NCBI GenBank assembly: GCA_965649825.1 | Contig: OZ287701.1 | Span: forward strand, 1 to 51,000 | Direction of reading: 5' to 3' | DNA from: Penicillus capitatus | Taxonomy: Eukaryota > Plantae > Chlorophyta | DNA length: 51,000 bases | Part shown: positions 1-49,085 of the stretch, piece by piece | Numbering within the stretch: the first letter of the stretch is position 1 | How the letters are laid out: the number at the start of each line of letters is the position of its first letter | Made by a program: the position numbers and the translations under genes | Notes under the pieces: generated by a model | Told to the model about the DNA's origin: nothing | Database searches by the model: none | Seen by the model: only the letters and a program-made list of their open reading frames with translations

Positions 1-1373
1 ACGTCTTCCAGCATCTTGAGTTTGTTGTGCCACAAAGGGGCCGCCGTCTCGCCGAGATCCCAGGCACGAACCTTCTTCATCGCATGAAACATCAGGTCAC
101 GGGATAGGATGTATCCCCATCCAGCTGCGTACAAGGTCCCATTGATCTCGGCTGCTGCATCCTCGTTGAAGTATTCGTAACTGAAATACCATTTCGACTG
201 CGGATCTCGAAAGACTTTGAATCCGCTTTCACTCTCTACCCGGCCCCTATATACCTGCTTCATGAATAGCTTCTCTTCATGTACGCCGAGAGTGTCGAGC
301 ACCCGATGCACGCGGACATACGTATCGTCATCTGTCTTGAGAACGTGCGTGTATCGTCGAGGGGACGACAGCGCGTATTTCAGCAAGCCCAGTGTTTTGT
401 TCGACAGGTTGTCGTACGAATCGTCTCCGCGTACGACGAAGACGTCGTCGTGTTCCCTGATCTCTGCCTCCAGTTTCTGCATCGACAGGTCAGTGCAGTT
501 CTCTTGAACACAAGGAGGGATTAGAGGTGCGACTTGTTATCCGAGGGATGTCTCACTTGGCTGACCGACGAAGAATCGCACGTCGACGTTGTCGTACATG
601 TTCAAGGCGTCCTGCATCCATGTCTTGCGAATGCCGTCTCTCCTCCGCCGACTGAGCTCGCTGCAGGCAGCTGTCGTCACCCCGATGAACAGGCGTATGT
701 CAAATCCCTCGGGAAAGCTACTCGTCTCTGGGAGCACACGGAAGTCACGTCCCATGCTCCGAGATGGGTCAGAGCTCGCTCGCTCGCTCCTCACCTTCTT
801 CTTCGGATTCTTCGAGAAGACGGTAGTCTATTTCCTCTTCGGCCGACAAGGGACGATCGCGACGCAGTGCGTCCGAGAACGCCACTCTGTTGCCTGCAGA
901 AACAACTCTCTTGCCCACACGATCTGAATGACGGATGTCGCACCGGAGACTGCATAGTCGACGGTCGCTTCATCTTCGATACCAGTCGCACCGAGGACAC
1001 GAAGACGGTCAACAGCACTGTCATCATCTGCAGAGTACTCCATTCGGTGATGTGCTGTTACAACGAGAAAGTAAATCGCACTTCTGTTCATCTGATAGGG
1101 GTCTGAGTAAATCTTCTGAGACCGTGGTGCTCGTGGGATAGTGTTTTCGCAGAGAGTCATCCTCGGGTACAGGAGAGAATTCAACTCTACCACGTGCTAC
1201 AACGATACACCCATCCCATGCCTTGTTAGCACGGAGCGCGATAAAACTTGTTGCCAAACGGACAATGTCATCATGACGCAGCCCATAGAAAAGAACATCA
1301 ATGACAGCGCGAGGACAACTTCTGGTCGAAGTCTGAAGAATGCACTCGGCCATACAAATGCCCGCTGCTTCAT
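1..1373 (-). CDS. GT31 family beta-1,3-galactosyltransferase-like protein, copy 1 (3' part runs off the window start; spliced)
   Basis: ATG at 1373, N-terminal TM anchor (VVLALSLMFFSMGCVMMTLSVW), intron 1197-1247 (GT..CTAAC..TAG). Later exons encode IRLFIGVTT, RRDGIRKTW, KTDDDTYV (DxD motif) and YAAGWGYILSRDL, typical of GT31. Confidence 0.85.
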
Positions 1374-2096
1374 TGCTTGTCGCAGACCTGCAGACCACGG
1401 CAACGTATTGATTTGTGAGGTCACGCGATAACGTCCAACCCGAGCGGGTGGGAGATTCGTTGCTAGAACACGTCGACTCTGTTTACAATCTGTCGATAAG
1501 GTATTCTTCTTGCGCCGGAGGGGCAAAAGGAAGTCCCTATTTTTCGATTCGCTTATTGCAGCTAGACGGTAACGAATGGTTAAGTAGTACGTGACTCTCA
1601 GATGGAATGAAAGGCGAACGACAACAGCAATGCCTTTTTGGTAGCACACAAAACAATGAATTTTAAGACGGAATATCGGTAAAACGCATTTGGGAACCGT
1701 TAGTCCCGGAATGTGGAAAATGATTGATGCGAGTACACATGACATCTAAAGAACCCACACGAAGGTTTTCATTAACAGATCTGTTTCAAAAAATCAGTCG
1801 TCAAGCGTCCAGGGTCACGATTGTACGATCAGTGAATCTAGTTTCTCATCTCCGTACACCAAAACTGTCATGACTTAAAACCTCACGCTCTTATTGATGC
1901 TCTCTAGCTAGAATTTTGTTATCAAGCAACTAAAAATTAGCGTAATTGACGACCGATTCAATAACGAAGTCCCTTCTTCGGAACCTTCCTTTCATATGCT
2001 CAAGCAAAACCTGAGCAGCGCAGCCTCACATACTTGGTTTATGTCTACGAGAATTCCAATTTGAACTGACGTCAGAAAATAGTGGTTGAAACTAAA

Positions 2097-3806
2097 TCAG
2101 ATTCGCTGATCTTTAGAGACTTGCGAGTTATGCCAGCTAAGCCAGGCACCGTAATCATAAAAATCAAAAAGACCAGAGGTGCAAACGATGTCTTTCAGTC
2201 CCCACAACCCGTTCAGCTCTTGAGCATGCAATCCATGAAGGAGTCGGGGAGAATCGACATCCAGATGGACGACCTGCAAAGCATCGTACGCACTGAGCAA
2301 ACAATCCTGCTAACGACCATGGATACCTACCGCTGTTCTCGAAGGGCAGCCTTGCCAGGGTGCTCTGAATTCTCCGTCCGATGTTGGTCTGTCAACAACG
2401 TCGGACACCAGTGCACCGATCATCACGTCTTCCGGCATGTTGAGTTTGTTGTGCCACAGCGGGGCCGCCGTCTCGCCGAGATCCCATGCACGAACCTTCT
2501 TCATCGCATGAAACATTAGGTCGCGGGATAGGATGTATCCCCATCCTGCTGCGTACAAGGTGCCAACGATCTCAGCTGCTGCATCCTCGTTGAAGTACTC
2601 GTAGCTGAAATACCATTTCGACTGCGGATCTCGAAAGACTTTGAATCCGCTTTCACTCTCTACCCGGCCCCTATATACCTGCTTCATGAATAGCTTCTCT
2701 TCATGTACGCCGAGAGTGTCGAGCACCCGATGCACGCGGACATACGTATCGTCATCTGTCTTGAGAACGTGCGTGTATCGTCGAGGGGACGACAGCGCGT
2801 ATTTCAGCAAGCCCAGTGTTTTGTTCGACAGGTTGTCGTACGAATCGTCTCCGCGTACGACGGAGACGTCGTCGTGTTCCCTGATCTCTGCCTCCAGTTT
2901 CTGCATCGACAGGTCAGTGCAGTTCTCTTGAACACAAGGAGGGATTAGAGGTGCGACTTGTTATCCGAGGGATGTCTCACTTGGCTGACCGACGAAGAAT
3001 CGCACGTCGACGTTGTCGTACATGTTCAAGGCGTCCTGCATCCATGTCTTGCGAATGCCGTCTCTCCTCCGCCGACTGAGCTCGCTGCAGGCAGCTGTCG
3101 TCACCCCGATGAACAGGCGTATGTCAAATCCCTCGGGAAAGCTACTCGTCTCTGGGAGCACACGGAAGTCACGTCCCATGCTCCGAGATGGGTCAGAGCT
3201 CGCTCGCTCGCTCCTCACCTTCTTCTTCGGATTCTTCGAGAAGACGGTAGTCTATTTCCTCTTCGGCCGACAAGGGACGATCGCGACGCAGTGCGTCCGA
3301 GAACGCCACTCTGTTGCCTGCAGAAACAACTCTCTTGCCCACACGATCTGAATGACGGATGTCGCACCGGAGACTGCATAGTCGACGGTCGCTTCATCTT
3401 CGATACCAGTCGCACCGAGGACACGAAGACGGTCAACAGCACTGTCATCATCTGCAGAGTACTCCATTCCGTGATGTGCTGTTACAACGAGAAAGTAATT
3501 CGCACTTCTGTTCATCTGATAGGGGTCTGAGTAAATCTTCTGAGTCCGTGGTGCTCGTGGGATAGTGTTTTTGGATAAAACCATTTTTGGATCGAAAAGA
3601 GAGGTGTTCTCGACTATCTGCTACAGTATATATATAACATGCTGCATTGACTTAGATGACGGCGTGACCTGCGTCGAGACCTGCTGCCAAACGGACAATG
3701 TCATCATGAAGCAGCCCATAGAAAAGAACATCAACGACAGCGCGAGGACAACTTCCTGTCGAATTCCGAAGAATGCACCTGGCCATACAAACGCCCGTTG
3801 CCTCAT
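2097..3806 (-). CDS. GT31 family beta-1,3-galactosyltransferase-like protein, copy 2 (complete; about 6 exons)
   Basis: ATG at 3806, TM anchor, intron 3621-3680, same GT31 motifs (KTDDDTYVRV, GWGYILSRDL, PEDVMIG). Last exon VVHLDVD...KDQRI ends at TGA 2097. Confidence 0.88.
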
Positions 3807-4229
3807 TGCTTGTCGCAGACCTGCAGACCACGGCAAGTATTGATTTGTGAAGTCACGCGATAACGTCCAACCCGAGCGGTGGGAGATTCGCTGCTAGAAC
3901 ACGTCGTCTGACTATCTGTTTACAATCTGTCGATAAGGTATTCTTCTTGCGCCGGAGGTGCAAACCAAAGTCCCTATTGTGTCATTCACTTATTGTGTCT
4001 AGGCGGCAACGAATGATTGATGGATACGCGAGATCGGAAGGATGGAAAGGTGAACAATGATAGTGACTACCCGCGACTTTGGGATACTTGAGCCAGTGGA
4101 TCATTCACACGGATTTCCGACGGATCGTCGGTTATTCCATTTCGCGTCGCGTCAACGTTTCTCAGGCATTACAGTGAGGTGCGACAGTGGCACTATGCGT
4201 TCACGATTAAAGCACTGGTCAATCTTTGC

Positions 4230-5973
4230 CTCTGTGACTCCATGGAATCAAATCGGGAATCTATTGCTGGCTACCACGAAAAGCGAATGTTATCGTCTTT
4301 CTGTGCCACTGCACTTCGCTGTAGGGGACCTTTTTCTTATTCAATGATTTGGCGAAGGAATATGGTATTGTAATGATCGGGCTTTCATGTGAAAGCGAAG
4401 CGGTAATGATGCTTCTCATAAATTGTGCTTCTATCCAATTGCACGGGCTAGACGAACCCACACACACAACGTTTTACTCCTCTCTCCTTATCCGATAATC
4501 AACTTCTTTAGTCAGTATAGATTGCATGTTGCAAATGACAACGATCGTAGTCGTTTTCAAAGACAACGGCTGCGGTTACTTGTAACAGGTAAAGGTTGTA
4601 GAATGAATTCTATAAGCGCGAATCTGTCCGTCTGCAAATTCTGATCGATGATTTCAATTAGATGATTGTGGTGGTTTCCTGATTCGAGACGACATCCTGA
4701 CAAGGAAGAGTACTCAAGACAATGAGATGAAATCTGATCCATTCAATATCTCTCATATCCGCAAGCTCTCAGACTTAGGGATGCTCGAAATCTGCTGCGG
4801 ACGTCGTCACGTAGCCTGCCTCTATATATATGAACGTTTCATTTTCATGAGTGAATTGATGCTAAGATGAAAGGGAAGTAGCCGCCTTGTTCTAGCACCT
4901 TGCCCACAATGCAAACAGAAATGCCCCCGATCTCGACAGTACGAAAGGTCTATCCCAGAGATCAGCAACAAGACAGTCGAGTTCGTCATTTCTGGCATGG
5001 AGCATACCTCATCTCAAGTCTACTGTTTTCCTGCACTCGAGTTAGGAAAGATTTCATACAGCAAGCCATGCTTGATGGTCTCTATATGAGTATTGGATGT
5101 TCTCCATTCTTGGCCATTCGGGAGATCTGATCAGGGATGATGCCCCCATCCGTGCACATAGATTGCAGGAGGCCTCTTCATGGTGCTTTAACGAAAGGAG
5201 AGATGGAACACAGGGATGAATGCAGTTCTGGACACTTGCCGAAAATGACTGATGTTCCTCTCGTGTTCGTTGAACTCGAGAAGAAAGTGCCAAAACCGTA
5301 GCGTCGTCCCTTTTTAACAAGACGTCGCTAACTGGTCTTGTGTCACTCTCCTGTCGTAGAACAACTGCAGACCAGATGATTACAAATATGAGTGAATCAT
5401 CGATGCAACAATATTCTTCCATGCTGCTGGATGAGACCGTGCGTGAAATCTTAAAGCCAATGCGTGTCCACCAAAAGCGATAGGACCGCTATGACATATG
5501 TCCTGCAGTTCCATATTGACACCCAAGATACATCTGTCGATGGATGAAAACAATTGATTCTGTTGTCGCGGAACGAGGAGGATGGTCGTGCTTTTCATAT
5601 GCCAGTGCGGAGAGAGACGTGACACAGTCAGTCGGTTGATTGAAGACCACGCATATCCGATATTTCGTCGAATGTCAAAGGGACCGGGTTGAAGGATGCT
5701 GTATTGCTCGATGACATAGCTAGCAATCGTACATCCTCTCATTTCAGGGATGCGAAACATGTTCCACACATGACAAGGAAGACTTCTGCAGATTCTGTCA
5801 AATCCTCCAATGGGGACGTTGTTTGGCATATGGCCACACAAGTCCCCCTTGAACGACCATTCAAAACCTTTGCATTTGCTGTTGATTGCCTTCTCTGTTG
5901 GCTTTCGATAAGTGTTGTGACGGAAATCGTGGCATCATCTCCAAATCGCATTCCACTGGATCCTCCTAGTTAA
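4230..5973 (+). CDS. Hypothetical multi-exon protein, unknown function (boundaries approximate)
   Basis: Phase-compatible exon pieces (…RLRLLVT G|gtaaag…ttag|DDCGGFLIRDDIL…GMLEICCG…; …MLLDETVREILKP; last exon …KDAVLLDDIAS…PLDPPS* at 5973). The stop lies 26 nt from the convergent CDK stop, like other genuine pairs here. No family recognised. Confidence 0.35.
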
Positions 5974-11094: not shown

Positions 11095-12744
11095 ATGTTA
11101 TCGAGAGAGATCATAGATCCATGTATCGCAATAATGACCATCCTGACACATCCAGGGCGACCATGTCCAGTACTAAAAACGCCCAGGGCGAAGAGGCGAT
11201 ATCGTTGTCGCACTTCGTCTGTCAAGAGAGATGGACACAGACGAACGGATGAGCGTCGTTCTCGAACACGACATGTAAGGATCTGTGCGGCTGCTGTGTC
11301 GTCGAGGAGTCAGTTGACGAAACCGGGTCGCGATGTCGAAAAAGTGAACATGGTGTACAAGTTTGGAGGCTCGTCATTGGCAGATGCCTCGAGAATTCGT
11401 GAAGTGGCGGATATCGTTTGCAGTTTTCCTCAGTACTATCCCTGCATCGTGCTCTCAGCCATGGGTAACACCACAAATCTCCTGATCGAATCGGGAAGTG
11501 CGGCGCTGAAATGCTCGGCCGACAAGATCACGAGCATGGCGTCCTATCAACAGATTCTCGAACGCCATATGGAAACTGCTGAGAAGCTAGAGGTGCCTGA
11601 AGATGTCCAACACGCGATCCGTTTACTGCTCAATGATTTGAAGCAACTCCTGACAGGGATCTCAATGATGCAAGAATTGACACCTCGTGCCAAAGATGCT
11701 GTTGTCTCCTTTGGCGAACGTATGGCCACTCGTCTGTTCAGTGGATACCTCAATGCACGAGACGTCCCCTCTGTCCAATTCGATGCATGGGATCTGGGAT
11801 TCGTCTCGACAGATGACTTTACCAATGCGGATGTCATTTTGAGTGCCACATTGCCCTCCATTCGAAAACACGTCTCCTCACTGGGCGGCAAGATTCCTGT
11901 CGTGACTGGGTTTCTGGCCAAGGGAGAGAAGTCTCGATCGATTACGACGCTTGGCAGAGGTGGAAGTGATTTGACAGCGACGATGATTGGCCTGGCATTG
12001 AATCTGCCGGAGGTCCAGGTCTGGAAAGACGTTGACGGTGTCTTGACTTCAGATCCGCGAATTGTCTCGTCTGCCAAACCTCTATCTGTCCTCACCTATG
12101 AAGAAGCAAGCGAGTTGGCTCACTTTGGAGCACAGGTTCTGCACCCGAGGGCTATGAAACCGGCAATGCTCTCGCAAGATGCCATGGCTGTCCGTGTCAA
12201 GAACTCCTATAATAGAGAGGCCCCGGGCACCGTCATTCAATCCCACAGAGATCTCTCCAACACATTGCTGACGAGCATTGTCATCAAAAGAGGCATTTCA
12301 GTCGTCGATATCGTCAGCACGCGTATGTTGGGTCAGTTCGGCTTTCTGGCACGGGTCTTCGAGATCTTCAAAGAAAATAAAATCTCCGTCGATGTGGTGG
12401 CCACCAGTGAAATCTCGGTTTCCATCTCACTGGATGCGGATCGGTATGCTGGAGAGGAAGAGGAGGAAGAACATCGCCCAGGGCATCTCCTGGGTCAGTT
12501 CGCCGGTTGGGCAGATGTGTCTCTGAGACGCGATCTGTCAATCATCAGTCTCATCTGCAACATTCAGCGATCCAGTGAAATCCTTGAAGTTGTCTTTCGC
12601 TGTCTGAGAGAGAAGAACATTAACGTACAGATGATCAGTCAAGGAGCATCGAAAACAAACATCTCATTGATCCTGCATGAAACGCAGGCAGATGCAGCAG
12701 TGACAGCAATCCATGATCAGTTTTTCGGCGCAAGTCACGGGTGA
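11095..12744 (+). CDS. AK (lysC-like): Monofunctional aspartate kinase, plant type, with N-terminal transit peptide and two ACT domains; intronless
   Basis: VYKFGGSSLA, VVSFGERMATR, TTLGRGGSDLTA, VQVWKDVDGVLTSDP, GAQVLHP, ACT motifs STRMLGQFGFLARVF and NVQMISQGASKTNIS; R/S-rich N-terminal extension. Confidence 0.95.
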   Translation: MLSREIIDPCIAIMTILTHPGRPCPVLKTPRAKRRYRCRTSSVKRDGHRRTDERRSRTRHVRICAAAVSSRSQLTKPGRDVEKVNMVYKFGGSSLADASRIREVADIVCSFPQYYPCIVLSAMGNTTNLLIESGSAALKCSADKITSMASYQQILERHMETAEKLEVPEDVQHAIRLLLNDLKQLLTGISMMQELTPRAKDAVVSFGERMATRLFSGYLNARDVPSVQFDAWDLGFVSTDDFTNADVILSATLPSIRKHVSSLGGKIPVVTGFLAKGEKSRSITTLGRGGSDLTATMIGLALNLPEVQVWKDVDGVLTSDPRIVSSAKPLSVLTYEEASELAHFGAQVLHPRAMKPAMLSQDAMAVRVKNSYNREAPGTVIQSHRDLSNTLLTSIVIKRGISVVDIVSTRMLGQFGFLARVFEIFKENKISVDVVATSEISVSISLDADRYAGEEEEEEHRPGHLLGQFAGWADVSLRRDLSIISLICNIQRSSEILEVVFRCLREKNINVQMISQGASKTNISLILHETQADAAVTAIHDQFFGASHG

Positions 12745-16428: not shown

Positions 16429-19400
16429 TTATGATTGACGAACGACGTTAGAAGTCGGTGATATGCGTGAATCAAGGGCACTTTTCAGAGCATGGAGTCG
16501 ATCGCCAAAGGCTGGCAGTGCTCTGTGTAATACAGAGATCTCCCTTTCGGTGCAGGTATTCAGCAATCCCTCGCGCAAGATATAGGCAGATGTCTTGTCA
16601 GCCAATTCCCCAGCGCCAATCGGAGATTGACTTGCGGCAGCGAGATAGCCAATGATATCTGTCGTCGGGATTCGGTTCAGCACATCATCCTCTGCCATCC
16701 ACGACAGAATCCGCGTGATGTGACTGTTGTGTGGATATTTTTCTGCCAGTTTGCCGAATGCTATGATCCATTGACGCGGTGACCCCCATTCGTTTTCTCT
16801 GGCCTTCAGCTTCTGCTCGACTCGCTCGACGCATACATTCAGCTGTGGTTCCATCGATGCCGTCGGGTGGAAGACATGCAATCGATATAGGATAATGTTC
16901 AGGTACCTTTCCGAACAGCTGTCCAGGATAGCAGGCGTGAGAGATTTGGCGAAGAGTTGATCACTGAAGGCAGCATCGGTGACGCCTGCCGATGCCGCTG
17001 CAAAGAAGAGTCCAGCAGTTGCTGCTCCGTCCATAGCATCCATCCGATCTGATCTCACAAGACGCTGAAGAAATTGCTGCACTTCAGGGGACTGGATCTT
17101 AGCTCTTCCGATAAAGTGCAGGAAACAATGGAGTGCTTTGAGCGTCAGTTTCTGCTCTATCGAACAGATGTGCTGCACAAACGGCTCCACACATTTATGC
17201 GATATCTGTCCCAAGCGCTGAAGTCCATCCAGGATGTTTACAACGGCGAGTGCATCGAAGGAGGAAAGAGGCGTCGATTCTAAACAACTTATGGCGCGTT
17301 CGAACAAGACGCTATCGTAGATATAACTTTTGCCTAAGGTGTGCAACAGCATGGATAGCAAATCTGGTGACAGTTCTTCGAGTCTTGAACGGCGGCGCAG
17401 CTCTCGGACGAAAAAAGTCGCCAGATGCATCTTGGCTCTGCCGTCTGTGAGTTTCTGCGAAGACTGCAGGAGGAGGACAAGTGATTTCTCAGTCATGGAC
17501 TGAAGAACTTCTGGAGATCTGAGGCCTTGGAACACAGGAATAAGGACCGAAGTATCAGAAATCTTCAGATGCGCCAGCCCTTCGGTTACCATAGAGATGT
17601 ACGATCCCTTCAACGATTCATAGAATCCAGCACGAGAATTCATTTCCTGCAGCAGTGTCTTCCACCAGTCGCTTTTCGATCGCCCTTTCTTAGACACGTG
17701 ATAGAACAACGTCACGAGTCCAGATGCATCCACATCGGCCAAGTGCACGCTCTCGATGAGTGTCTGCAACATCTTCTGCTTCTTCGGCACGTCGTTGTCA
17801 CACAGAAGCAGAAAACAGATGAGCAGGACAAACTGATGCGCATTGAATACTTGCAGTCGGCGCGGACGACAGATTTCAGAGAACAGTAAAGAGAGTCGAT
17901 CACTTTTCTTGTTTTTCCAGTATCCAGATGATGTGACGAGACGGACCAACCTCTCTTCTTTCGTCGCTTCGAGCTCCTTAGCATCGATGGCCTTGTCAAT
18001 GAGTTTCTCCAGCTGCTCTTGGGTTTCAACAGCGGTTAGACACCAGACTTCAGTACTGTCGGGAAAGACATGGACAGCGAACGACGGATGCAGTGATTGT
18101 GTTTTTATTCTTTCCTCGATGTGCGTCACAATCGAGTGCCATCCATCGGCCTTTTCGTAGTTAAGCTTCCGAAGACTCGTGATCATAATCCGCAGCTCAT
18201 TGGGAGACAGCTGCTGCAGAAAGAGACGATCGAATCCGTTCGTGCTCTCGTGGAAGGTCCCCATCAGATGATTCCGCTCCGTCGTGGACATCTTTGCGCG
18301 ACACAGCATCAGTCCAAATATCAGACTGATCACTTCTTGCGGAGGAAGGCTCTTCAAATTTTCCACTTTTAAGCGAATGGCATCCAACAGCAACTGAAGC
18401 AGCACATGGTAAGGCTCGTGCAGTGCTTGTCGGTTCGCCTGTGGTAGTCTGGACATTCCATGAACCATCATACAGAGTCCCTGGTATGTCAACTGCTCCA
18501 TCCGGGACGGCAAGAGGACCTCGTCCATGATTCTGGTGAGAAAGCTCATGTCTTGGAGCTGCAGAGGGCCAACGGCATAAACAACTAAGGCCAATCCGTG
18601 TTCGGAAAAGGTCGACAGGCGTCGAAAACGCATGACCTCATGACACAGTTGTGTCAGAGCATCTTGTTTTCCTTTGAATCGTAATTGGGCCAGACTGTAG
18701 AGAATGGAAGACAGATCCCATGCAGAAAAACTGCGAAGCATCTCCACCCTCTGCGCTTGCTGCAGTAACCGAACAATGATCGATCTGTCGTGCAGTCGCA
18801 GACGTGCCATCGAATACAACGCCATAGAAATCGTTTCCACTGCAATGACGACGTTCTCGGGTGATGATCGATCCATGATTCTCGACAAGAGAAATCGTAT
18901 GAGCGGCACATCCAAGACGTCCAATCGACTCAAACTGTAGAGCAGAATGGAGCATGGAAGGGCACCCAGAATGTCCCTCTGTGTGGCAGCCAAACTCAAA
19001 GACTGCGCCAGTCTGGCTGCAAACACTTCCAAAGGAGCTAATTGGCTCAGGACGTATACAATGCCAGACACATCTCTGGCATCGAGCTTTTCGTCAAAGA
19101 GGTTTATTGTATTCAGTGTGTTGTCCAGCACATGGACTTGACTTGGAAAGAGAGGCGTATGTTTCAGCATGCCGAAGCGTGGCAAGTATTCCATGTCGTA
19201 GATGGATTGCTTAGGTGCCTGGTTTTTGTCGTGCTGTCTTTGCAGTGTCCCCAGAGACGTCAGAAATAAAATACGATCGCGTTGCTCCAGTTCATTTGGC
19301 TGAATCCTTCTCGCCAAATCTTCGATCCAATTCAGCTCGACGCACTTCAATCTGGCAAAGCAACGCAGGACATGCACCATCTGGTCGCTCTTTAATTCGG

Positions 19401-19775
19401 CTGCGCGTTTATGCAGACTGCTGCCCACATACTCTAGATCGGTACAGAAGACAAGAGAATGCTTTGGATCTGCCTGAAGCTTCTCGAGCCCTTCAACACT
19501 CGCACGCACTAAATAAGAATCCGACACACAGGGTAACGTCCCGCACCGTCAATCAGCTCCTCAGACGTCGCTTTTTCGCCTTTCTCGCGGATTTCTCGGA
19601 TCGTCGAGTTCGCCGGAGTATCGCTCGTGAACATCCTGATCTTCCACACGGAAGATCCTGCTGTTCGTGATTCCGTCGCGAAGATCGAAGGACGCGATGG
19701 TGTTCGGAGGTACATCCTTGTCGTTGTATACACCATTCGACATGTTTCAAAAACACAGCGCGATTTTCGCAACAT
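16429..19775 (-). CDS. OPR/FASTK-like helical-repeat protein (~1100 aa) with probable mitochondrial presequence
   Basis: Exon 1 MLRKSRCVFETCRMVYTTTRMYLRTPSRPS… (R/S/T-rich, acid-poor), one 38-nt intron (gtgcgg…ttag), then a ~3-kb exon with ~38-aa repeats such as DARDVSGIVYVLSQL, SILLYSLSRL, FSAWDLSSILYSLAQL, FSEHGLALVVYAVGPL, resembling the OPR consensus. Confidence 0.7.
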
Positions 19776-39479: not shown

Positions 39480-39551
39480 CGCCGCTGCCGGGAATCGAAC
39501 CCGGGTCACCTGCGTGACAGGCAGGTATACTAACCGCTATACTACAGCGAC
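39480..39551 (-). tRNA. trnD-GTC: tRNA-Asp (anticodon GTC), intronless
   Basis: GTCGCTGTAGTATAGCGGTTAGTATACCTGCCTGTCACGCAGGTGACCCGGGTTCGATTCCCGGCAGCGGCG: 72 nt, acceptor, D, anticodon (CTGTCAC loop) and T arms (GTTCGATTC) all pair; plant-type tRNA-Asp. Confidence 0.97.
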
Positions 39552-42174: not shown

Positions 42175-42561
42175 TTTCAGTTGTTGGAGGAAACGGTCAC
42201 GACGTCTCCAGGAATCTTATCGACACGCATGCTTTGTTTTTGCCGTCCATGTTGCCTCGTTGTGCACGAGGAACGCCAAACGTCAGTCAGCACTTGGATA
42301 GATAGCTCCCCTTGAAGAGGATTCAGTTATCCGCTTATCCAATCGCAATTCGACCGTTGTAGTGCTACGACGAAGCAAACCGTAGAAATCGCATCGATTA
42401 AATACTTAAGCAATTTCCTAAGATTCTCCCTCTATTTGCGGCAGCTAGCTGTAAGGAGCGTGGTGGTTTATCAGGAAGGTGAAAACGTGTACGCCTTTCT
42501 ATTGCCGAGAACTGCACATTTCAAAGTGGAGCGGCGTTGGGCGACATTTCTCATCGAGGGC

Positions 42562-45500
42562 ATGCATCAACCGAAGGGCGCACTCCGAAGGCGGTATTCG
42601 AAGACGCCCAGCATGAATCTGGACGTCAGACAGAGGGTTGCATCCGTAAGAACGCGTTCTGTTTGTGTGTATCCATCGGGGAGAAATGCCACTAGATATG
42701 TGCTCCACGTCCAGCGTCCTTTCACGAGTGTTTGGAAGCGGCACTGAGTAGACCGGGTGAAATACAATGGGGAGGCGTACAAGATATGGTCCAAGTGCTC
42801 GTACAGGAGCTCATTTCTCCGCATGAAGCACTCAAGACTCTGAAACCCTACCTTCGCAGCAACATGCCAGCCGTTGTCCTGAAGATACTGACTGTTGGGG
42901 CATATCATGTCCAACACGTCGTGAAATGCTGTGCTGTGCTGCATAGATCGTGGATGCCCTTATTTTCAACTGCGGGGAGCGGATATACGAAGCAATGTTG
43001 TTGGACAAGTGGAATTCGCGAATTGCTCGATTAACTTCGCATGCAGATAATAAAGTTAAGCACGCAGCGTTGCAGCTTATTTCAAATTATGCTCAATCAT
43101 ATAAGTGGGTGTCATTCCCTATCGCCTTCTGTTGATCACCCTGAGCTTCTGTGCAGTGGGACTTCTTTTGGAGATGTATTTGCAGAGATCGCAGTTTCAT
43201 TAACCACGAAGGGTTTCATACTTCCAGTGGCCGCCCCTGCCAGTATAAACTTCAAAAAGAAGTCCATTGATTCGGCCAATGTTGATGAGGTTTTTACAAA
43301 AGGCATCGATTTTCTTCAGTTTCCGTATCCAGATTCATCCACATCCGAAAGCACTAATACAGACGAAGAACAGTTTCCTGAACCTGATGACATCTCGCTT
43401 ACGGTACAGCGCCTTTCGTTTGCCATGCGATCCGACTCTTTCTGACGGGTGCTTGCATGTGTGCTATGGTAGATCCAGAAAATAGACGATGACGTTTCCA
43501 AGTTGATGGACGCCATATCTCAATGTCACCATATCACCAAGACGTTCAAAGTGGGGGGATGTACACGCAAAGAGATACTAGATAGGCTGAACATGGCCTG
43601 GGTGGTAGCAGAAAAGTGTCACGTATGGTCGGAAAACATGCAGGTACATCTTAGCTCGTGTTGGTTGGATGGAAACTACGGTTACCATAGGCCTTTCTGA
43701 CGAAGGATTTGAGTCATGATGACCTTACGGCACTTTTGAGGACGAACGACAAGCTCCAAGAGGGTTTGCGTTCATGGGAAGGGCTCGTATCGATGGATAT
43801 CGTCAACAGCGGACACTCAGACAACGACAGCCATTCTTCGACGGACGGAACAAAGTGGGGCCTCAAAGCGCGACACGTTGCCGATTCCGCCATCGACCAA
43901 GACCAATCACCAACCGACGAAGTGGAGAGATTGAAGGTTGAAAACGAGGGATTGCGACAATCCCTGTCAGATTTGGAGGCGGCGCAGCAAAGAGAGATGC
44001 TCAAAACCGACGCAGACTACCGTAGCTCCTTGAAAGACGTCAAAAGCAAAGCGGCGAGTCGCATTAAGGATCTGCTGAGACAGGTAGACAACGGATATCC
44101 CTCTCTCGCCACCCCCACGTCGCGCTTCTTCAGATCGCAGACTACGAGTTGAGAGAGAAGCGATTGAAGCGAGATGCCGAGGATGCCCTTCTCAAACTCA
44201 AAACTGCTGACGAGGCGTTGCTCGATAAGGATCAAGAGACGGACCGACTTGAAGGTGCACTCGAATGTCCAAGCTCCCGTGTTGACGGACAGGTCTAACG
44301 CGGCTTTAATGCTTGTAGTCGAAGCGGCAGACATTCGAGAAGAACTCGAACGACGGGTAGAAGAGGCGCGACAGTGTCAGCTGGAAATCGAAAGCCAGTT
44401 GCAGGAGAAGACGGCCCAAGCTGCTGACCTTATTGTTCAGCTCACTAGCAAACAAGGTGACGACTTAGTAATGACGACCTGACCGACTAACATCATCGTG
44501 TCTCAGATGAACTCGACGCTGAGAGAGCGAAGGCACGCGCCGACGCTGCGAATTATCTTGCTAAAATCGAGCTGCTCACAAGACAAGTCGAAAAGATGAC
44601 GCGGGAATCTCAGCAGGTTCGTGCGGCATGGCATCTCGCTTGTTGATTGAGAGGCGACATGTGGGTGGCAGCTAAGAATCGAGGAATACGAACAGAAGAT
44701 GGCCAATCTGAAGCTGGAGCTGAAACGCGAAAGCATTCTTCGGAAGAAAGCTTTCAACCACATTCGCGAACTGAAGGGCAATATCCGTGTCATTGCACGC
44801 ATCCGACCCGTCCGGGACGGAACACCCGAGGATGAATTGGCGATTCGGGTGAGTGAGACCCTCATCGACTGAGTGACCGAAACGCGAGATTTGGATGACA
44901 GATGCACGACGACTACACCATCGAACATCTGTCCAAGTTGTCGGCGTCCGTAGGCGCCCCCCGTCGCGATGCCGAAGATGGCGTGAAGCGTTACGAATTT
45001 GATGCGTGCTTTGGACCAAAAGCGACACAGAATGAAGTGTATGCCGAGACGCAGGGCTTGATCCAGTCAGCAATGGACGGATACAATGTCTGCATCTTCT
45101 GCTATGGTCAGACTGGCTCCGGTAAGACGCACACTCTCACAGGCAAGCCTTCCCTTTCATTCTTTGAGCCTTCAGTCGATGTAGCATATGTTTTGTTATT
45201 ATGTGTGTTTGCAGGGTATGAACAGAATCCAGGTATCGTTCCTCTCTTCATGGAAGACGTATTCAATTCAGACAGTAGCGTGCAGCAAACATCCGTCAGT
45301 TGCTACATGTTGGAGCTTTATCAAGTACGTCGCAGCTTCCGTTGAGATGGCTGATCATCACGTACGTGTGTCGGTTACGGTTAGGATGATTTGTTGGACT
45401 TGCTCAGTCCGACTTCAAGAAAGGGCAAGATGAGTATACGAACGGATGCGGAGACGGGTTTGGTGTCAGTCAAAGGAGCAACACAAGTGGACGTTTGTAA

Positions 45501-46118
45501 CGCCGCAGAGTTGAAATCAGCATTTGATGCGGGAATCAAGAGAAGAAAGACAGCCACCACTCGCTGCAACATCAGCTCATCAAGATCTCATTTGATTTTC
45601 ACAGTTTTATTGGAGAGAGTGCATGTGATTACCGGGAGTCACACGAAAAGTAAAATCACGTTTGTAGACTTAGCAGGGTCCGAACGGGTAGTAAAGTCTG
45701 GCGCAGTCAATGACAAAGAGCGTCTTAATGGTTTGTCGCATCTCACTCTTTGGATGCTTAAGTGTGATGATCTGTAGAGGCCAAGGCAATCAATAAGAGT
45801 CTATCCGCTTTGGGTGATGTGGTGTCTGCTTTAACGTCGCAAGAGTCCTTCATTCCTTACCGCAATCACAAGCTCACAGAGCTGATGCGCGATTCCTTGG
45901 GAGGCAGTGCCAAGACCTTGATGATTGTGAACATCTCTCCGCTTCCCTCGGATGCAAGAGAGACGCAGAACACTCTGGATTATGCTCAGAGGGCAAAGCA
46001 AGTGACGAATGAGAATTCGAGGTCCTACGAGACGAGAGAGCTTGCTCGACTGAAAGCCATTAATGAAAAGCAAGCACGGGAAATCCAGCAGCTCAAGGCC
46101 TTGGCAGCCAAGACGTAA
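42562..46118 (+). CDS. VHS-GAT-coiled-coil-kinesin-14 (KCBP-like motor) fusion protein, 14 exons, ~944 aa
   Basis: Exons 42562-42645, 42696-42893, 42947-43104, 43157-43403, 43473-43643, 43691-44083, 44134-44254, 44319-44456, 44507-44616, 44672-44848, 44902-45142, 45215-45324, 45385-45730, 45778-46118 (sum 2835 nt, no internal stop). Motor motifs [70 protein letters not shown]. Confidence 0.88.
45143..45214 (+). other. GC-AG intron (72 nt, in frame) just after the kinesin P-loop
   Basis: …ACA G|gcaagc…tttgcag|GG TAT GAA; removal restores the canonical GKT..T.G…PG spacing. Confidence 0.7.
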
Positions 46119-46620
46119 TTTTTTCTATGGTGCATGTTTTCAACTTCTTTTCTATGTTCATATTTGCACCCTCACATACACCACCAATTCGCCTCCACCT
46201 CAAAATCACGGACACCTTTCCCTTTTCAAGCCATGGAAAGGGCCGACGTATTATTTAATTGATCGACATGTGTGTGTGAACAGCTCTGTCGTCTCTTTCG
46301 TGGTCAGATGATGCTTTGACTCCAATTTTCTGATTAACTTAGATTGTTTGCTTGTTTGATGATGTTATGACTCCGATCAACTCTGATTCTTTTGTACTTG
46401 TAATGTGCAAACAGACGGTACACATTTACTAAAGTGTATAGACACGCATCGGCGCCTCGCTATTCGCTCGACTCTCGCCTGCGAGTCACTTCGGCGCGTC
46501 GTATAAACACAGTCGATGCCGAACACCGCGAACCGTAACGCGGCCATGATTTGAGATGGCAGAAATGGAAGAAATGATTGCGTGCGTTATCCGCTCGCGG
46601 CTGTCAGAACTTCAGTAACG

Positions 46621-47014
46621 ATGGGATTAGTCGAAGACTTTGAAAAAGCGGCAGAAGAGGCGACGACGCTCTTGCCGGCAACGCTCTCGCAAGAAATCCA
46701 ATTGATCTTGTACTCCTTGTTTAAACAATCCAAATTTGGCGACAACGATACGCGTAAGGGTTCCTTTTCTACAGCAATGGACAACACGATCTTTCTGCCT
46801 GCGAGCAGCCAAGCCCGGTTTCTTAGACTTTAAAGCAAAAGCGAAATGGGAGGCGTGGAATGGACAGAAAGGCAAATCTAAGGAAGAGGCCATGCAGGAA
46901 TACATCAAGTTTGCACTTTTCCTTGTGCTTTCGCTTTACCCCCCTGCGTGGTTGTGCAGCAAAGTGGAGGAACTCAAACTAGAGCACTGTCCAGCCCCTG
47001 CTCCGGCAACATGA
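46621..47014 (+). CDS. ACBP: Acyl-CoA-binding protein (3 exons)
   Basis: [13 protein letters not shown]…[17 protein letters not shown]|…[32 protein letters not shown]|…KVEELK…*. Confidence 0.95.
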
Positions 47015-47018
47015 GGCA

Positions 47019-47832
47019 TCAGGCATCTCTCTTTGCATACAATCCTTTTGAAAGGATGTAGTCTCGAACGCGGATGGGCACGAACGCTGTAATGTCTCTG
47101 CCTTCTTGCACACGACTCCGCACGAGGCTCGAACTCACGTTGCATTGCTCGAGTTTCCGAACGATGTGAATCTGATCCTTCTCGGCAGCGAAGGGCGAGG
47201 TCATGTCTGAGAACAGTCCTTCGACGTCCACATCGCCACGGTCGATACAGATCACGCCGTAGCGGCGTAGAAGTTCCCGAACTTGATCGACGATCCAGAC
47301 GCCAGGTGTGTGAAACGACTTGACTAAATCTGCCCCCGAGAGCAACATGACATCGATCGACGCTCCTAGAGCTTCCTCGAAATGCTGCAGGACTAACAAC
47401 GTCCGCAGACACTCTGACTGTCTTGCTTCCCAGTCATCGACCATGATCCCGTCCATCTCCTGCGCCGCCAACCGACACATCTCGATCCTGTCCATGATGC
47501 TGTTCCGTGGGGTGGAGGATGGGTCAGGGATACCGATGCTGTGCAGGGATCAGCGTCGATTTCTTGTATCGATCGTTCACCGGTGACATATAGCCTCCAA
47601 TATAGTTCCACTTCTTCTGCGATCAGTCACCACATCGTGTTGCGACGGAGATGGCAAAGGGATGCTGTCCAACGTGATGCGCGTGCGTTCGTGCAGCGCG
47701 GAACATTTCGAGATGTGCCAGCGTTGGCGGATTGAAGCTCCCGCAGGCCACGACGACGACGTTACGGATCCCTTTTTCAACACGCTGTAGGGCAAGTTTG
47801 TCTCGAGGAAAGACGTAACCCATCCCTTCCAT
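47019..47832 (-). CDS. NMNAT: Nicotinamide/nicotinate mononucleotide adenylyltransferase
   Basis: GSFNPPTLAHLEMF, GYMSPVND, DRIEMCRLA, VDDWEARQ, MLLSGADLVKSFHTPGVW, NVSSSLVR…VRDYI…LY. Confidence 0.93.
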
Positions 47833-47881: not shown

Positions 47882-49085
47882 CTACAAATGATAGTCCAAG
47901 TTAAATGTCGACATCAAGAAGTCATAGGTCGTGAAGCCAATGGCCGTCGACGGTATCACCTTGATGTAGTTGATGCTCATGCCTCTAAACAAAGCTCTAT
48001 ATCCTCCATGTTTGAAGAGTTTCTGCATGGCATCCCATGTTGAATGGTATAGCCTTTGCGGCGACTTTGTGTGATGGGGATCGAATCCAGATGAGTAGTC
48101 CGGGACCTGCATGCGTCTCCGGACAACGTCGAGGGGATAGGATACCGTTTGGCCCAACAATCCAGCAATGCCTCCAAATGCGAGCATGACCGGAATTGGG
48201 AGGCGATCTGCTTTCGGATGCCATCTCCTCGTGTAGAGATCCTTGAGCGATTGGTACACATAGAACTTCACGCCAGCATAGGGGACGATGCCTAGGAGAG
48301 TTGGCCCCATTCCGCGATAGATGGCTGAGAAACCGTGTTCCTGAATCAGACGCCATAACACGCGACGAATCGTCAAACGTGTCTTCCATGTCCAAGCATG
48401 ACCATCCACCTAACCACACGTCTATCCCTCGAGATCAAGATGCACGAGAAGGCACTTGCCTCTGAGAGACAGGCCAGTCGAGTGCGAGCGACGTCGAGTG
48501 GATACGTCACGAGAACGGCCGTTGCTCCGGCAGCACTGCCAGCAACGAAATGGACGTTTAGCAAACGCACCCAGCTATGTACGCTCTCTGTCAAACACCT
48601 CTCTCGCACGCATTGAATGCCAAAGTGCGACGCAATGTACCAATGGCTTCGTGGAGCGCCGCATTCCGCGTCAGTTCCCGGCGATAGATCTCGTAGGCGT
48701 GGAAATGAATGGCGGAGTAAGGAATGATGCGTGCCACACTGGCACCATTTCCTCTACATATCTCACTCAAACGATCCGAACATGTGTGATCTCACTTGAA
48801 GAGACCCAGCAAGCCTTCCTCACGTGCGAGCTTCTTGAGCATCTCCCACACACGGATCTGTTTCATGGCACCTGTCTAACAAACGATCCGCGCGTCCTGT
48901 CGCTGTCGTCACCCTGCACTTGATAGAGGATCTTCACACGCTCAAGGGGTGCCACGGAGCTCTTGCCGACCATTCCCGCAATGCCGCCGGCCATGAGCTC
49001 CTGTCATCGAAGCTCGAATGGAGAGACATGCAGGGGTGCTGCGAACTTTGACGAAAACAGGAAGGTCATCCAGATGCGACGACAT
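47882..49085 (-). CDS. Mitochondrial carrier, CoA transporter / Graves disease carrier (SLC25A16/COAC1)-like
   Basis: [13 protein letters not shown]|[27 protein letters not shown]; [27 protein letters not shown]; [12 protein letters not shown]; [15 protein letters not shown]. Confidence 0.9.
48410..48459 (-). other. GC-AG intron (50 nt) in the CoA carrier
   Basis: …TCA GAG|gcaagt…gtggttag|GTG GAT; phase 0 on both sides, and the donor matches the AG|GCAAGT consensus. Confidence 0.8.

Follow-up and report, generated by a model that had tools for sequence, protein, structure and literature searches.

The window, by which we mean the whole stretch of 51,000 nucleotides of Penicillus capitatus DNA that was analysed, codes for a motor protein. 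It is very likely a KCBP-type kinesin-14 of the Kin14VIc family, in which a VHS domain and a GAT-like bundle replace MyTH4-FERM and which would serve the movement of organelles by a mechanism that we infer. The protein is a further member of a known family of VHS-tailed kinesins; its architecture is not new. Two points go beyond the published description of this family (PMC12961179): the GAT-like helical bundle that follows the VHS domain, and the occurrence of the same architecture in Mesostigma and Chlorokybus.

Gene structure

Fourteen exons and 13 introns, rebuilt from the window sequence, yield one open frame of 944 amino acids (Table 1). The CDS comprises 2835 nt, inclusive of the TAA stop that ends it. 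From the first to the last, the introns measure 50, 53, 52, 69, 47, 50, 64, 50, 55, 53, 72, 60 and 47 nt; twelve of them are GT-AG and one is GC-AG. The 13 introns of 47-72 nt and the stop-free 944-residue frame of the earlier note were reproduced, and all peptide strings quoted there are present in the protein.

The model stands far above chance and can be compared with a syntenic locus in a second ENA assembly (L002), which is 88% identical at the nucleotide level over 9 kb. Exon identity between the two is 95.2%, the sole indel being one of 3 nt at the extreme 3' end; intron identity is 70.9%, and the intron alignment has 49 gap columns. L002 preserves every one of the 13 pairs of splice sites, and the orthologous frame is open over 945 amino acids. 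Mismatches are distributed over the three codon positions as 29/10/95; dN/dS amounts to 0.076 for the whole CDS, to 0.106 for the tail (aa 1-365) and to 0.025 for the stalk. The proteins of Caulerpa, Mesostigma and Chlorokybus align without gaps across ten of the 13 exon junctions (2-6, 8 and 10-13).

Of course, a splice model might wrongly fuse two adjacent genes, in this case a TOL-like adaptor and a kinesin, and the public assembly offers only prokaryote-style gene calls, which break up the locus. Such an artefact is, however, hard to reconcile with exon 6, where a single frame runs without a break from the final GAT-like helix into the beginning of the stalk, with inter-exon gaps that all measure 47-72 nt between conserved splice sites, and with the same full-length architecture, from VHS to C-terminus, in three independently annotated genomes. 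It is close to refuted, and its chances appear negligible. Because exon 6 and also exon 10, which spans from the stalk into neck and motor, each bridge two modules across such short gaps, and because exons are far better conserved than introns, dN/dS is low and the flanks are less conserved, the locus, as read from its sequence, is a single gene that is intact and evolves under purifying selection.

An in-frame stop lies upstream at 42313, and 42562 is the first ATG downstream of it. Translation may begin there (M1) or at M18; both methionines are kept in L002. The GC-AG intron has a counterpart in L002, which is likewise GC-AG but 68 nt long, so that retention there would shift the frame. A 24-residue insert at this site is absent from the orthologs of Caulerpa, Mesostigma and Chlorokybus.

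Identity with L002 extends beyond the coding sequence. It is 91% over the 5' leader (42334-42561) and 94-97% over the 3' UTR (46134-46433). Upstream of 42334 it varies between 74 and 91%, mostly below 85%, and no block in this upstream flank reaches exon-level identity; at 46434-46533 it is 66%. A transcription unit with conserved 5' leader and 3' UTR is probable. The window locus further encodes an aspartate kinase. The GC content is about 50% here, as compared with 52.4% in Ostreobium, 45.9% in Bryopsis and 40.4% in Caulerpa. Judged by it and by one gene tree, the source alga probably belongs to the Bryopsidales.

Table 1. Positions in the window of the VHS-tailed kinesin gene and its parts
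Feature	Position	Strand	Basis
Predicted transcription unit (5' leader, CDS, 3' UTR)	42334..46433	+	identity to L002 in 100-nt steps
VHS-GAT kinesin-14VI CDS (14 exons)	42562..46118	+	splice model, L002 conservation, dN/dS, junctions collinear with orthologs
Exons 1-5	42562-42645, 42696-42893, 42947-43104, 43157-43403, 43473-43643	+	
Exons 6-10	43691-44083, 44134-44254, 44319-44456, 44507-44616, 44672-44848	+	
Exons 11-14	44902-45142, 45215-45324, 45385-45730, 45778-46118	+	
Alternative start codon M18 ("MNL...")	42613..42615	+	Mesostigma and Chlorokybus orthologs begin MNLLR
VHS domain, aa ~36-165, interrupted by introns 2 and 3	42717..43211	+	Pfam, profile, ortholog model
Acidic Ser-rich linker, aa 166-229	43212..43403	+	A1 alignment
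GAT-like three-helix bundle, aa 230-322, interrupted by intron 5	43473..43798	+	sub-threshold Pfam, profile, hhalign, AF2
Helical stalk, aa 366-560	43928..44731	+	composition, ortholog model, dN/dS
Kinesin-14 neck and KCBP-type motor, aa 561-907	44732..46004	+	Pfam, KCBP structure matches
GC-AG intron 11, 72 nt, without stops, in frame if retained	45143..45214	+	
Tail after motor, aa 908-944: neck mimic and conserved helix	46005..46115	+	

Tail, stalk and motor

The AF2 models considered here are those of the Mesostigma ortholog, not of the window protein, and were built on shallow alignments with a mean pLDDT of 65-69. They display, in this order, eight helices, three helices, long helices and the motor.

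The assignment of the VHS domain is firm, because the Pfam cut-off is passed, the family profile matches STAM and Hrs, and the ortholog model has a VHS fold. Pfam places VHS on aa 52-146 and scores it at 31.5-32.9 bits; the gathering cut-off of 29.8 is exceeded in the window protein and in all three orthologs. A profile of the four orthologs (A1) matches VHS domains of STAM, Hrs, TOM1 and GGA in the PDB at 5e-13 to 1e-5 (STAM2 5e-13, Hrs 6e-13, TOM1 9e-9) and GGA1 GAT at 0.009. The VHS domain of the Mesostigma model consists of eight helices and matches that of STAM1 with a TM score of 0.83; with the tail of this model, Foldseek retrieved VHS chains of STAM1/2, Hrs, GGA and TOM1, including the STAM1-ubiquitin complex 3ldz. 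The tryptophan aligned with W26 of STAM1, which we take to be a ubiquitin contact residue, is retained as W52, and the position of STAM1 L30 is occupied by Gln. Pfam matches of the same region to TOG, HEAT and ARM (E 0.03-0.09) were dismissed as generic helical-repeat noise.

The linker behind the VHS domain is modelled with low pLDDT in the ortholog; the motif G[IL]DFLQ..[FY]P[DE]SS is common to the window protein and Caulerpa. It leads into a bundle that is probably a GAT domain. The Pfam scores for GAT stay below the cut-off of 31, with 14.6 bits for the window protein and 16.6, 17.5 and 28.1 for the orthologs, but they fall on the same position in all four. A GAT-only profile (A3) found GGA1 GAT (1x79) as its top match in the PDB at E=0.0023, a score equalled by a chance match, yeast DNA polymerase epsilon. 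The alignment of the region with GAT by hhalign reached 80.9%, the AF2 model shows helices 245-267, 276-300 and 306-330 as a three-helix bundle, and the third helix carries the signature "LL..ND.L". The Foldseek search that retrieved the VHS chains returned no GAT chain, and a single-sequence search of the PDB with the GAT region alone gave no match.

The stalk, aa 366-560, is free of proline and contains one glycine; E, K, R, D, L, A and Q make up 79% of its residues. The Mesostigma model has long helices here (355-431 and 440-535). A coiled coil is presumed.

The motor is clearly of the KCBP type (kinesin-14VI) by sequence comparison. Just after the proline-free stalk follows the kinesin-14 neck ELKGNIRV (aa 573-580, with GNIRV at 576), and the motor motifs are the P-loop GQTGSGKT at 668, switch I SSRSH at 781 and switch II DLAGSE at 811. 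Pfam assigns Kinesin with 1.2e-100 and Microtub_bd (PF16796) with 3e-37, the latter covering aa 558-723. Among PDB structures KCBP scores best (1sdm 314 and 3h4s 312 bits), ahead of KIFC3 (230), Kar3 (204) and Ncd (192), and the Foldseek ranks 1-6 for the motor of the Mesostigma model are all KCBP structures. The alignment with KCBP continues through the neck mimic into the first part of the regulatory helix, where ten residues face SKEVARLKKL of KCBP. Conservation of this C-terminal tail extends to Caulerpa, Mesostigma and Chlorokybus, and against L002 it has not a single amino-acid change. The protein ends 37 residues past the motor and lacks the acidic "negative coil" of KCBP; control by calcium and calmodulin as in KCBP is therefore not to be assumed. 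Neither MyTH4 nor FERM had a Pfam match at E<=1 in the 944-residue protein. Since MyTH4-FERM is absent, the protein is KCBP-like in its motor only and is not a canonical KCBP.

In essence, the domain reading from which we started has held: the N-terminal VHS domain, the C-terminal KCBP-type motor and the replacement of the usual MyTH4-FERM N-terminus of KCBP were all borne out. The reading had been made dependent on a VHS or GAT match in residues 1-330; there, VHS passes its cut-off and GAT stays sub-threshold. For the proposed GAT domain, position, GGA1 profile match, hhalign and modelled bundle speak in favour, the Pfam cut-off and Foldseek do not. Of the long coiled coil, the proline-free region and the long helices were found, while the coiled coil itself is a presumption.

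Relatives and age of the family

Full-length collinear matches were obtained with Caulerpa lentillifera g4708.t1 (52% identity), Mesostigma Mv00547 (35%) and Chlorokybus Chrsp52S06609 (33%). By these alignments, the Caulerpa VHS-kinesin is the nearest of the relatives sampled. All three proteins have VHS above the cut-off and a GAT match at the same place. In a neighbour-joining tree of the motors, the VHS-bearing proteins form one clade in 200/200 bootstraps, within which the motors of Mesostigma and Chlorokybus pair in 192/200, as their species do. The tails of the VHS-bearing kinesins are homologous across both VHS and GAT. VHS is absent from all 41 other long KCBP-like matches, nine of which have MyTH4-FERM and eight ankyrin repeats. 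A kinesin from MMETSP (P0001) displays a weak UBA match (E 0.027); it falls outside the VHS clade.

Other homologue searches contributed little. With the N-terminus, no named relative was found; with the four-sequence profile, the sole match was a 98%-identical fragment from a sister assembly. With the full protein, the matches were confined to distant motors such as KIN-14B, none of them above 39% identity, and KCBP was missed, probably because the word pre-filter was swamped by words from the stalk and low-complexity regions; the nulls of this search are therefore weak and say little. JGI metagenome contigs scanned with the tail yielded nothing.

The earlier note knew of no described kinesin with this architecture. 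This does not hold. Kin14VIc of Bryopsis (GMH44105.1) has been described as a kinesin-14VI that resembles KCBP and bears a VHS domain in its tail (J Phycol 2025, PMC12961179; also out as a preprint of May 2025), homologues were reported in Caulerpa and Ostreobium, and the family was called Bryopsidales-specific. The architecture had thus been annotated in green algae in part, i.e. without the GAT-like bundle and the streptophyte members. The window protein resembles Kin14VIc in being a KCBP-like kinesin without MyTH4-FERM whose tail contains a VHS domain. It would belong to the same family, a kinship that we draw through the Caulerpa protein, presumably the homologue meant in PMC12961179.

As this comparison with GMH44105.1 runs through other proteins, and as similar proteins exist in streptophyte algae despite the reported restriction to Bryopsidales, the fusion seen here could have arisen independently of Bryopsis Kin14VIc. 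Such convergence is very improbable: all the VHS-bearing proteins found have motors that fall into a single clade, the tails are homologous over VHS and GAT, and Mesostigma and Chlorokybus group as their species do. Common descent being preferred, the VHS-kinesin family is probably older than the Bryopsidales, since Mesostigma and Chlorokybus share its architecture and their motors fall into the one clade. It is then probably not an invention of the coenocytic Bryopsidales; if so, it is an old motor of the green lineage that has been lost in most branches.

Function and comparison with known systems

In green algae and plants, organelles are moved to microtubule minus ends by kinesin-14s and not by dynein; to our knowledge, cytoplasmic dynein is absent from the cytoplasm considered here. 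Apart from the FERM domain of KCBP, little is known about how kinesin-14s choose their cargo. A VHS-GAT tail on a KCBP-type motor would be a second and very different module for cargo recognition.

The sole experimental datum on the family is the reduced chloroplast motility after RNAi in Bryopsis: with Kin14VIc knocked down, chloroplasts moved at 86 instead of 208 nm/s, movement was slowed both ways and microtubules stayed undisturbed (PMC12961179). This work ties the family to chloroplast motility and leaves the mechanism open. By analogy with this phenotype, the role of the window protein is most likely microtubule-based movement of organelles, chloroplasts in particular. The ~200-residue stalk would dimerise the protein, the VHS-GAT tail would dock on membrane-bound cargo via a protein, ubiquitin or acidic-lipid ligand, and the KCBP-type heads would haul this cargo towards microtubule minus ends, the motors probably acting in clusters, as moss KCBP does. 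Tail ligand, direction of travel and cargo are each what we infer. The slowing in both directions is not explained by a simple minus-end transporter.

With a GAT-like bundle behind the VHS domain, binding of ubiquitin or lipid becomes a concrete hypothesis. Taken further, the protein might be a self-motorised sorter of the ESCRT-0/TOL type, which binds ubiquitinated cargo or endosomes by VHS and GAT and carries them to minus ends. VHS followed by GAT is indeed the layout of the TOM1/TOL ubiquitin receptors (PMC12051064), the best matches of the VHS domain in sequence and fold are the ubiquitin-binding ones of STAM and Hrs, including the complex 3ldz, and W52 is kept. The Gln at the L30 position, however, does not fit, and the C-terminal parts by which TOM1/TOL bind clathrin and recruit ESCRT-I are replaced by stalk and motor. 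Also, the only known phenotype of the family concerns chloroplasts, and PMC12961179 mentions neither GAT, ubiquitin nor endosomes. We consider a sorter possible but doubtful; it would be compatible with an organelle motor if the ubiquitinated ligand sat on the organelle. More speculative still, and in our opinion rather unlikely, is the combination of both ideas with great age: a Viridiplantae motor from before the chlorophyte-streptophyte split, mostly lost since, whose tail is a ubiquitin receptor for marked organelle surfaces. If true, the motor would pull ubiquitin-marked proteins of the chloroplast outer envelope, or endosomes, along microtubules, and, in cells that lack cytoplasmic dynein, the positioning of organelles would be coupled directly to ubiquitin signalling.

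Binding to microtubules is common among kinesin-14 tails, and a role as cross-linker or organiser has been proposed for the MyTH4-FERM tail of KCBP in trichomes. The VHS-GAT tail could analogously be a cytoskeletal module, i.e. a second microtubule or an actin site, or an autoinhibitory one, and the protein a cross-linker or organiser of filaments. PMC4574192 describes binding of the KCBP tail to microtubules and actin. Altered tracks could also account for the slowing in both directions. Binding to microtubules or actin, however, is not known to us from any VHS or GAT domain. After Kin14VIc RNAi, moreover, the organisation of microtubules was reported to be unaffected (PMC12961179), and a cytoskeletal tail appears quite unlikely. 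An organelle motor remains our preferred reading.

Among the known systems, canonical KCBP/ZWICHEL (1sdm, 3h4s) has the motor that comes nearest in sequence and, as judged from the ortholog model, in fold. Shared are the kinesin-14 neck, the C-terminal motor and, as far as the alignment reaches, the neck mimic and the beginning of the regulatory helix. They differ in that the window protein has VHS-GAT in place of MyTH4-FERM and a short C-terminal extension devoid of the negative coil.

In animals, myosin VI and TOM1/TOM1L2 couple a minus-end motor to a VHS-GAT adaptor on endosomes or autophagosomes. The coupling is non-covalent, operates on actin and is achieved via a C-terminal motif of TOM1. 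Its functional logic matches the idea of a ubiquitin sorter; here, in contrast, adaptor module and microtubule motor reside in one polypeptide.

With TOM1, the plant TOLs and GGA the window protein has in common an N-terminal VHS domain, a flexible linker and then a GAT-type bundle, which is sub-threshold in Pfam here. The ligands of these adaptors are ubiquitin (VHS, GAT), Arf-GTP (GGA) and Tollip (TOM1). The GAT domains of plant and protist VHS-GAT proteins are nearer to that of GGA than to that of metazoan TOM1 (PMC3473312), and the same holds for the GAT-like region of the window protein. Unlike these adaptors, it has no C-terminus with a clathrin box or ESCRT-I-binding part but a stalk and a kinesin motor instead, and GAE, which in GGA comes with a hinge, had no Pfam match in it. 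It contains a VHS-GAT module and is not a member of the TOM1/TOL/GGA adaptor family.

Kin14VIc of Bryopsis and its homologues in Caulerpa and Ostreobium share with the window protein the C-terminal KCBP-like kinesin-14VI motor, the VHS tail and the lack of MyTH4-FERM. PMC12961179, however, assigns VHS only and confines the family to the Bryopsidales, whereas we find a GAT-like bundle behind the VHS domain and further members in Mesostigma and Chlorokybus.

The gene and its conservation

The window is eukaryotic DNA with a GC content of about 50%. Its aspartate kinase frame places it on a 723,813-bp contig of ENA metagenome assembly ERZ25074695, whose gene calls are all of prokaryotic style. 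The affinity of the kinesin gene to Caulerpa suggests that the source is a bryopsidalean alga; in GC content it comes closest to Ostreobium. The product of its kinesin gene, as rebuilt from the sequence, comprises 944 amino acids (aa). The 13 introns measure 50, 53, 52, 69, 47, 50, 64, 50, 55, 53, 72, 60 and 47 nt; 12 are of the GT-AG type and one (45143-45214) is GC-AG. An in-frame stop is found at 42313, and the next ATG is that of M1 (42562). A second methionine, M18 (42613), opens 'MNL' and may be the start instead of M1, because it resembles the 'MNLLR' starts of two orthologs. Exon 6 by itself runs from the last GAT-like helix into the stalk, exon 10 from the end of the stalk through the neck to the first motor strand. 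Each thus bridges modules, and the fusion is therefore independent of any one splice call.

The reality of this model was judged from comparative evidence. L002, a syntenic sister locus on a 659-kb contig of ENA assembly ERZ26696514, was reached through a fragment of 176 aa from the last profile search that shares 98% identity with exon 6. L002 is collinear with the window (88% identity across 9 kb) and has an identical gene order around the kinesin gene, which was found on three related ENA contigs. Exon identity to L002 amounts to 95.2%: apart from 134 mismatches, the exons differ by a single 3-nt indel, which lies at their very 3' end. In the introns identity drops to 70.9%, the alignment has 49 gap columns, and lengths change by, e.g., +1, +7, +13, -4 and +10 nt. 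L002 preserves every one of the 13 splice-site pairs and a frame that is open throughout (945 aa). The window's GC-AG intron contains no stop and would keep the frame if retained; it is nevertheless a true intron, since its L002 counterpart measures 68 nt and no insert was found at this site in the orthologous proteins. The 13 introns and the single 944-aa frame described in an earlier note, a reading of the sequence alone, are confirmed by the rebuilt model and by L002, and all peptide strings quoted there occur in the product.

The exon mismatches to L002 are distributed over codon positions 1, 2 and 3 as 29, 10 and 95. The corresponding dN/dS is 0.076 overall, 0.14 in the VHS domain, 0.04 in the GAT-like part, 0.025 in the stalk and 0.09 in the motor. 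Flanking conservation suggests a transcription unit of about 42334-46433: 5' of 42334 identity to L002 is mostly below 85%, and no block of exon-level identity lies upstream of this point. The 3' UTR (46119-46433) is 94-97% identical to L002, i.e., at the level of coding exons, before identity falls abruptly to 66%, which points to a regulatory or localisation element under constraint.

Other features of the window

The tandem repeat at the beginning of the window looks like a recent local duplication. The aspartate kinase carries an Arg/Ser/Thr-rich N-terminal extension of about 85 aa, which could be an organelle-targeting peptide. The 1032-aa frame yielded no Pfam match; by eye, helical motifs such as 'LSSILYSLAQLRF' and 'ISMALYSMARLRL' recur in it, and it is reminiscent of the FASTK, heptatricopeptide or octotricopeptide families of organellar RNA-binding repeat proteins.

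Features annotated in the window
Feature	Positions	Strand	Remarks
Tandem direct repeat, 2424-nt period	1-4848		first 300 nt of both copies 95% identical
Twin 190-aa ORFs	534-1106 and 2958-3530		one residue different
GT31 galactosyltransferase ORF	2310-2906	minus	within the repeat region 1-4848
Aspartate kinase	11095-12744	plus	single exon; AA_kinase and ACT domains
1032-aa uninterrupted ORF	16429-19527	minus	
tRNA gene	39480-39551	minus	upstream of the kinesin gene
Kinesin gene	42562-46118	plus	14 exons
Acyl-CoA-binding protein exon	46621-46760	plus	about 500 nt downstream of the kinesin gene
Cytidylyltransferase-like gene	47019-47495	minus	
Mitochondrial carrier gene	47882-48409	minus	

Motor and tail

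Pfam recognises Kinesin at aa 610-907 (1.2e-100) and Microtub_bd at aa 558-723. Among PDB sequences the motor matches potato and Arabidopsis KCBP with 314 and 312 bits, as against 230 for KIFC3, 204 for Kar3 and 192 for Ncd. The KCBP alignment extends beyond the motor through the neck mimic to the start of the regulatory helix. Both the catalytic motifs of the motor and its kinesin-14 neck motif are intact. AlphaFold2 models were those of the Mesostigma ortholog, not of the window protein; the best Foldseek match of the modelled motor is again KCBP. The KCBP-type motor of the earlier reading was correctly identified.

The VHS domain is established. Pfam places it at aa 52-146 with 31.5-32.9 bits (cut-off 29.8), and the relatives from Caulerpa, Mesostigma and Chlorokybus, with 40, 41.2 and 34.8 bits, all exceed the cut-off. 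A profile of four tails matches VHS structures of STAM2, Hrs, STAM1, TOM1, TOM1L1 and GGA at 5e-13 to 1e-3. The Mesostigma tail model consists of eight helices (37-168), a disordered linker and three helices (245-330, pLDDT 69-87), followed by two very long helices and the motor; Foldseek aligns it with VHS domains of STAM2, STAM1-ubiquitin (TM 0.83, rmsd 2.6 Å), Hrs, GGA and TOM1.

That a GAT domain follows, as had also been claimed, is quite probable. The profile of the GAT-like part has GGA1 GAT (1x79) as its top match over the whole length (E=0.0023; hhalign probability 81%), and the three modelled helices agree with it. A segment of yeast DNA polymerase epsilon scores equally, however, and thus marks the noise level of this search; the four-tail profile reaches GGA1 GAT at about 0.009-0.09. 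Pfam GAT stays under its cut-off of 31 bits, with 14.6 in the window protein and 16.6, 17.5 and 28.1 at the equivalent position in Caulerpa, Mesostigma and Chlorokybus (the last with E=2.4e-6), and no GAT chain is among the Foldseek matches listed for the tail model. On this profile and structure evidence the VHS domain is taken as established and the GAT domain as probable.

At the level of sequence, the gene is intact and under constraint and combines a competent-looking KCBP-type motor with a VHS and GAT-like tail. The linker between the two tail domains (43212-43403, aa 166-229) shares with Caulerpa the motif G[IL]DFLQ..[FY]P[DE]SS.S. The surrounding acidic sequence is variable, and the motif may be one for phosphorylation or a short linear interaction. 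Of two positions at which STAM1 contacts ubiquitin, one is not conserved in the window protein.

Relatives, origin and function

A word-indexed protein search detected no relative with the tail and only distant motors with the whole protein. Relatives were sought by an exhaustive protein search with the exon 14 translation. The survey covered the best 150 matches in a 50%-clustered library, and the distribution of VHS kinesins is therefore a lower bound. Among these matches the best full-length ones are Caulerpa lentillifera g4708.t1 (900 aa), Mesostigma viride Mv00547 (904 aa) and Chlorokybus atmophyticus Chrsp52S06609 (850 aa). Each aligns with the window protein collinearly and in one piece from VHS to C-terminus, at 52%, 35% and 33% identity, respectively, and 10 of the 13 exon junctions (2-6, 8, 10-13) are crossed without gaps in all three. 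The public Caulerpa model (P0015) looks imperfect, as it begins inside the VHS domain and misses its first helices; that of Chlorokybus (P0021) has a hydrophobic insert of about 35 aa ahead of the GAT-like region, which looks like a retained intron.

In a neighbour-joining tree of 89 motors, KCBP-like and other kinesin-14, the window protein, its L002 counterpart, these three relatives and two N-terminally incomplete sequences, P0016 (JGI metagenome) and P0018 (MMETSP), form a clade in 200/200 bootstraps. Within it, window, L002 and Caulerpa group in 200/200, Mesostigma and Chlorokybus in 192/200. Of 41 other long proteins with similar motors among the best 150 matches, 9 carry MyTH4-FERM, 8 ankyrin repeats and a few further modules (PTB/IRS in 6, a single MORN, a single WW or SH3); VHS occurs in none. 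The PTB/IRS and RA-like matches may lie within FERM regions, and one of the KCBP-like matches (P0013-P0162) comes from the tick Amblyomma americanum and is uncharacterised. Judged from these sequences, KCBP-type motors seem to have been joined with several different tails repeatedly, and the VHS-GAT form is evidently one discrete subfamily.

A literature search on VHS-tailed kinesins yielded a single study, which also exists as a preprint (PMC12961179, J Phycol 2025). Of the three kinesin-14VI genes of Bryopsis, one encodes Kin14VIc (GMH44105.1), a protein with a putative VHS domain and without MyTH4-FERM; the authors suggest that the fusion originated in Bryopsidales (PMC12961179). The earlier statement that no such kinesin had been described is therefore outdated, and the architecture was already known in part from green algae; the VHS domain and the motor type of that interpretation stand. 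The window protein is a new member of the described VHS-tailed kinesins. What is added is modest: a GAT-like domain and an older origin. The GAT-like bundle makes the tail TOM1/TOL-like, more than 'a VHS domain'. Two early-diverging streptophyte algae, Mesostigma and Chlorokybus, share the architecture, and the clade branches as the species do; this speaks for an origin that predates the split of chlorophytes and streptophytes, with losses afterwards.

RNAi of Kin14VIc with three non-overlapping dsRNAs lowered chloroplast velocity in both directions and left microtubules undisturbed; GAT, ubiquitin and endosomes are not mentioned in that paper (PMC12961179). By analogy, the window protein may serve organelle (chloroplast) motility. 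Its long, proline-free stalk, predicted to be helical in an ortholog, would mediate dimerisation, and movement would be minus-end-directed, both as in other kinesin-14s, while the tail would attach to a membrane-bound ligand. That this ligand is ubiquitinated or endosomal cargo, as the earlier note proposed, is a reasonable hypothesis that can be reconciled with a role at chloroplasts. From canonical KCBP the window protein differs by its short post-motor tail of 37 aa without an acidic coil.
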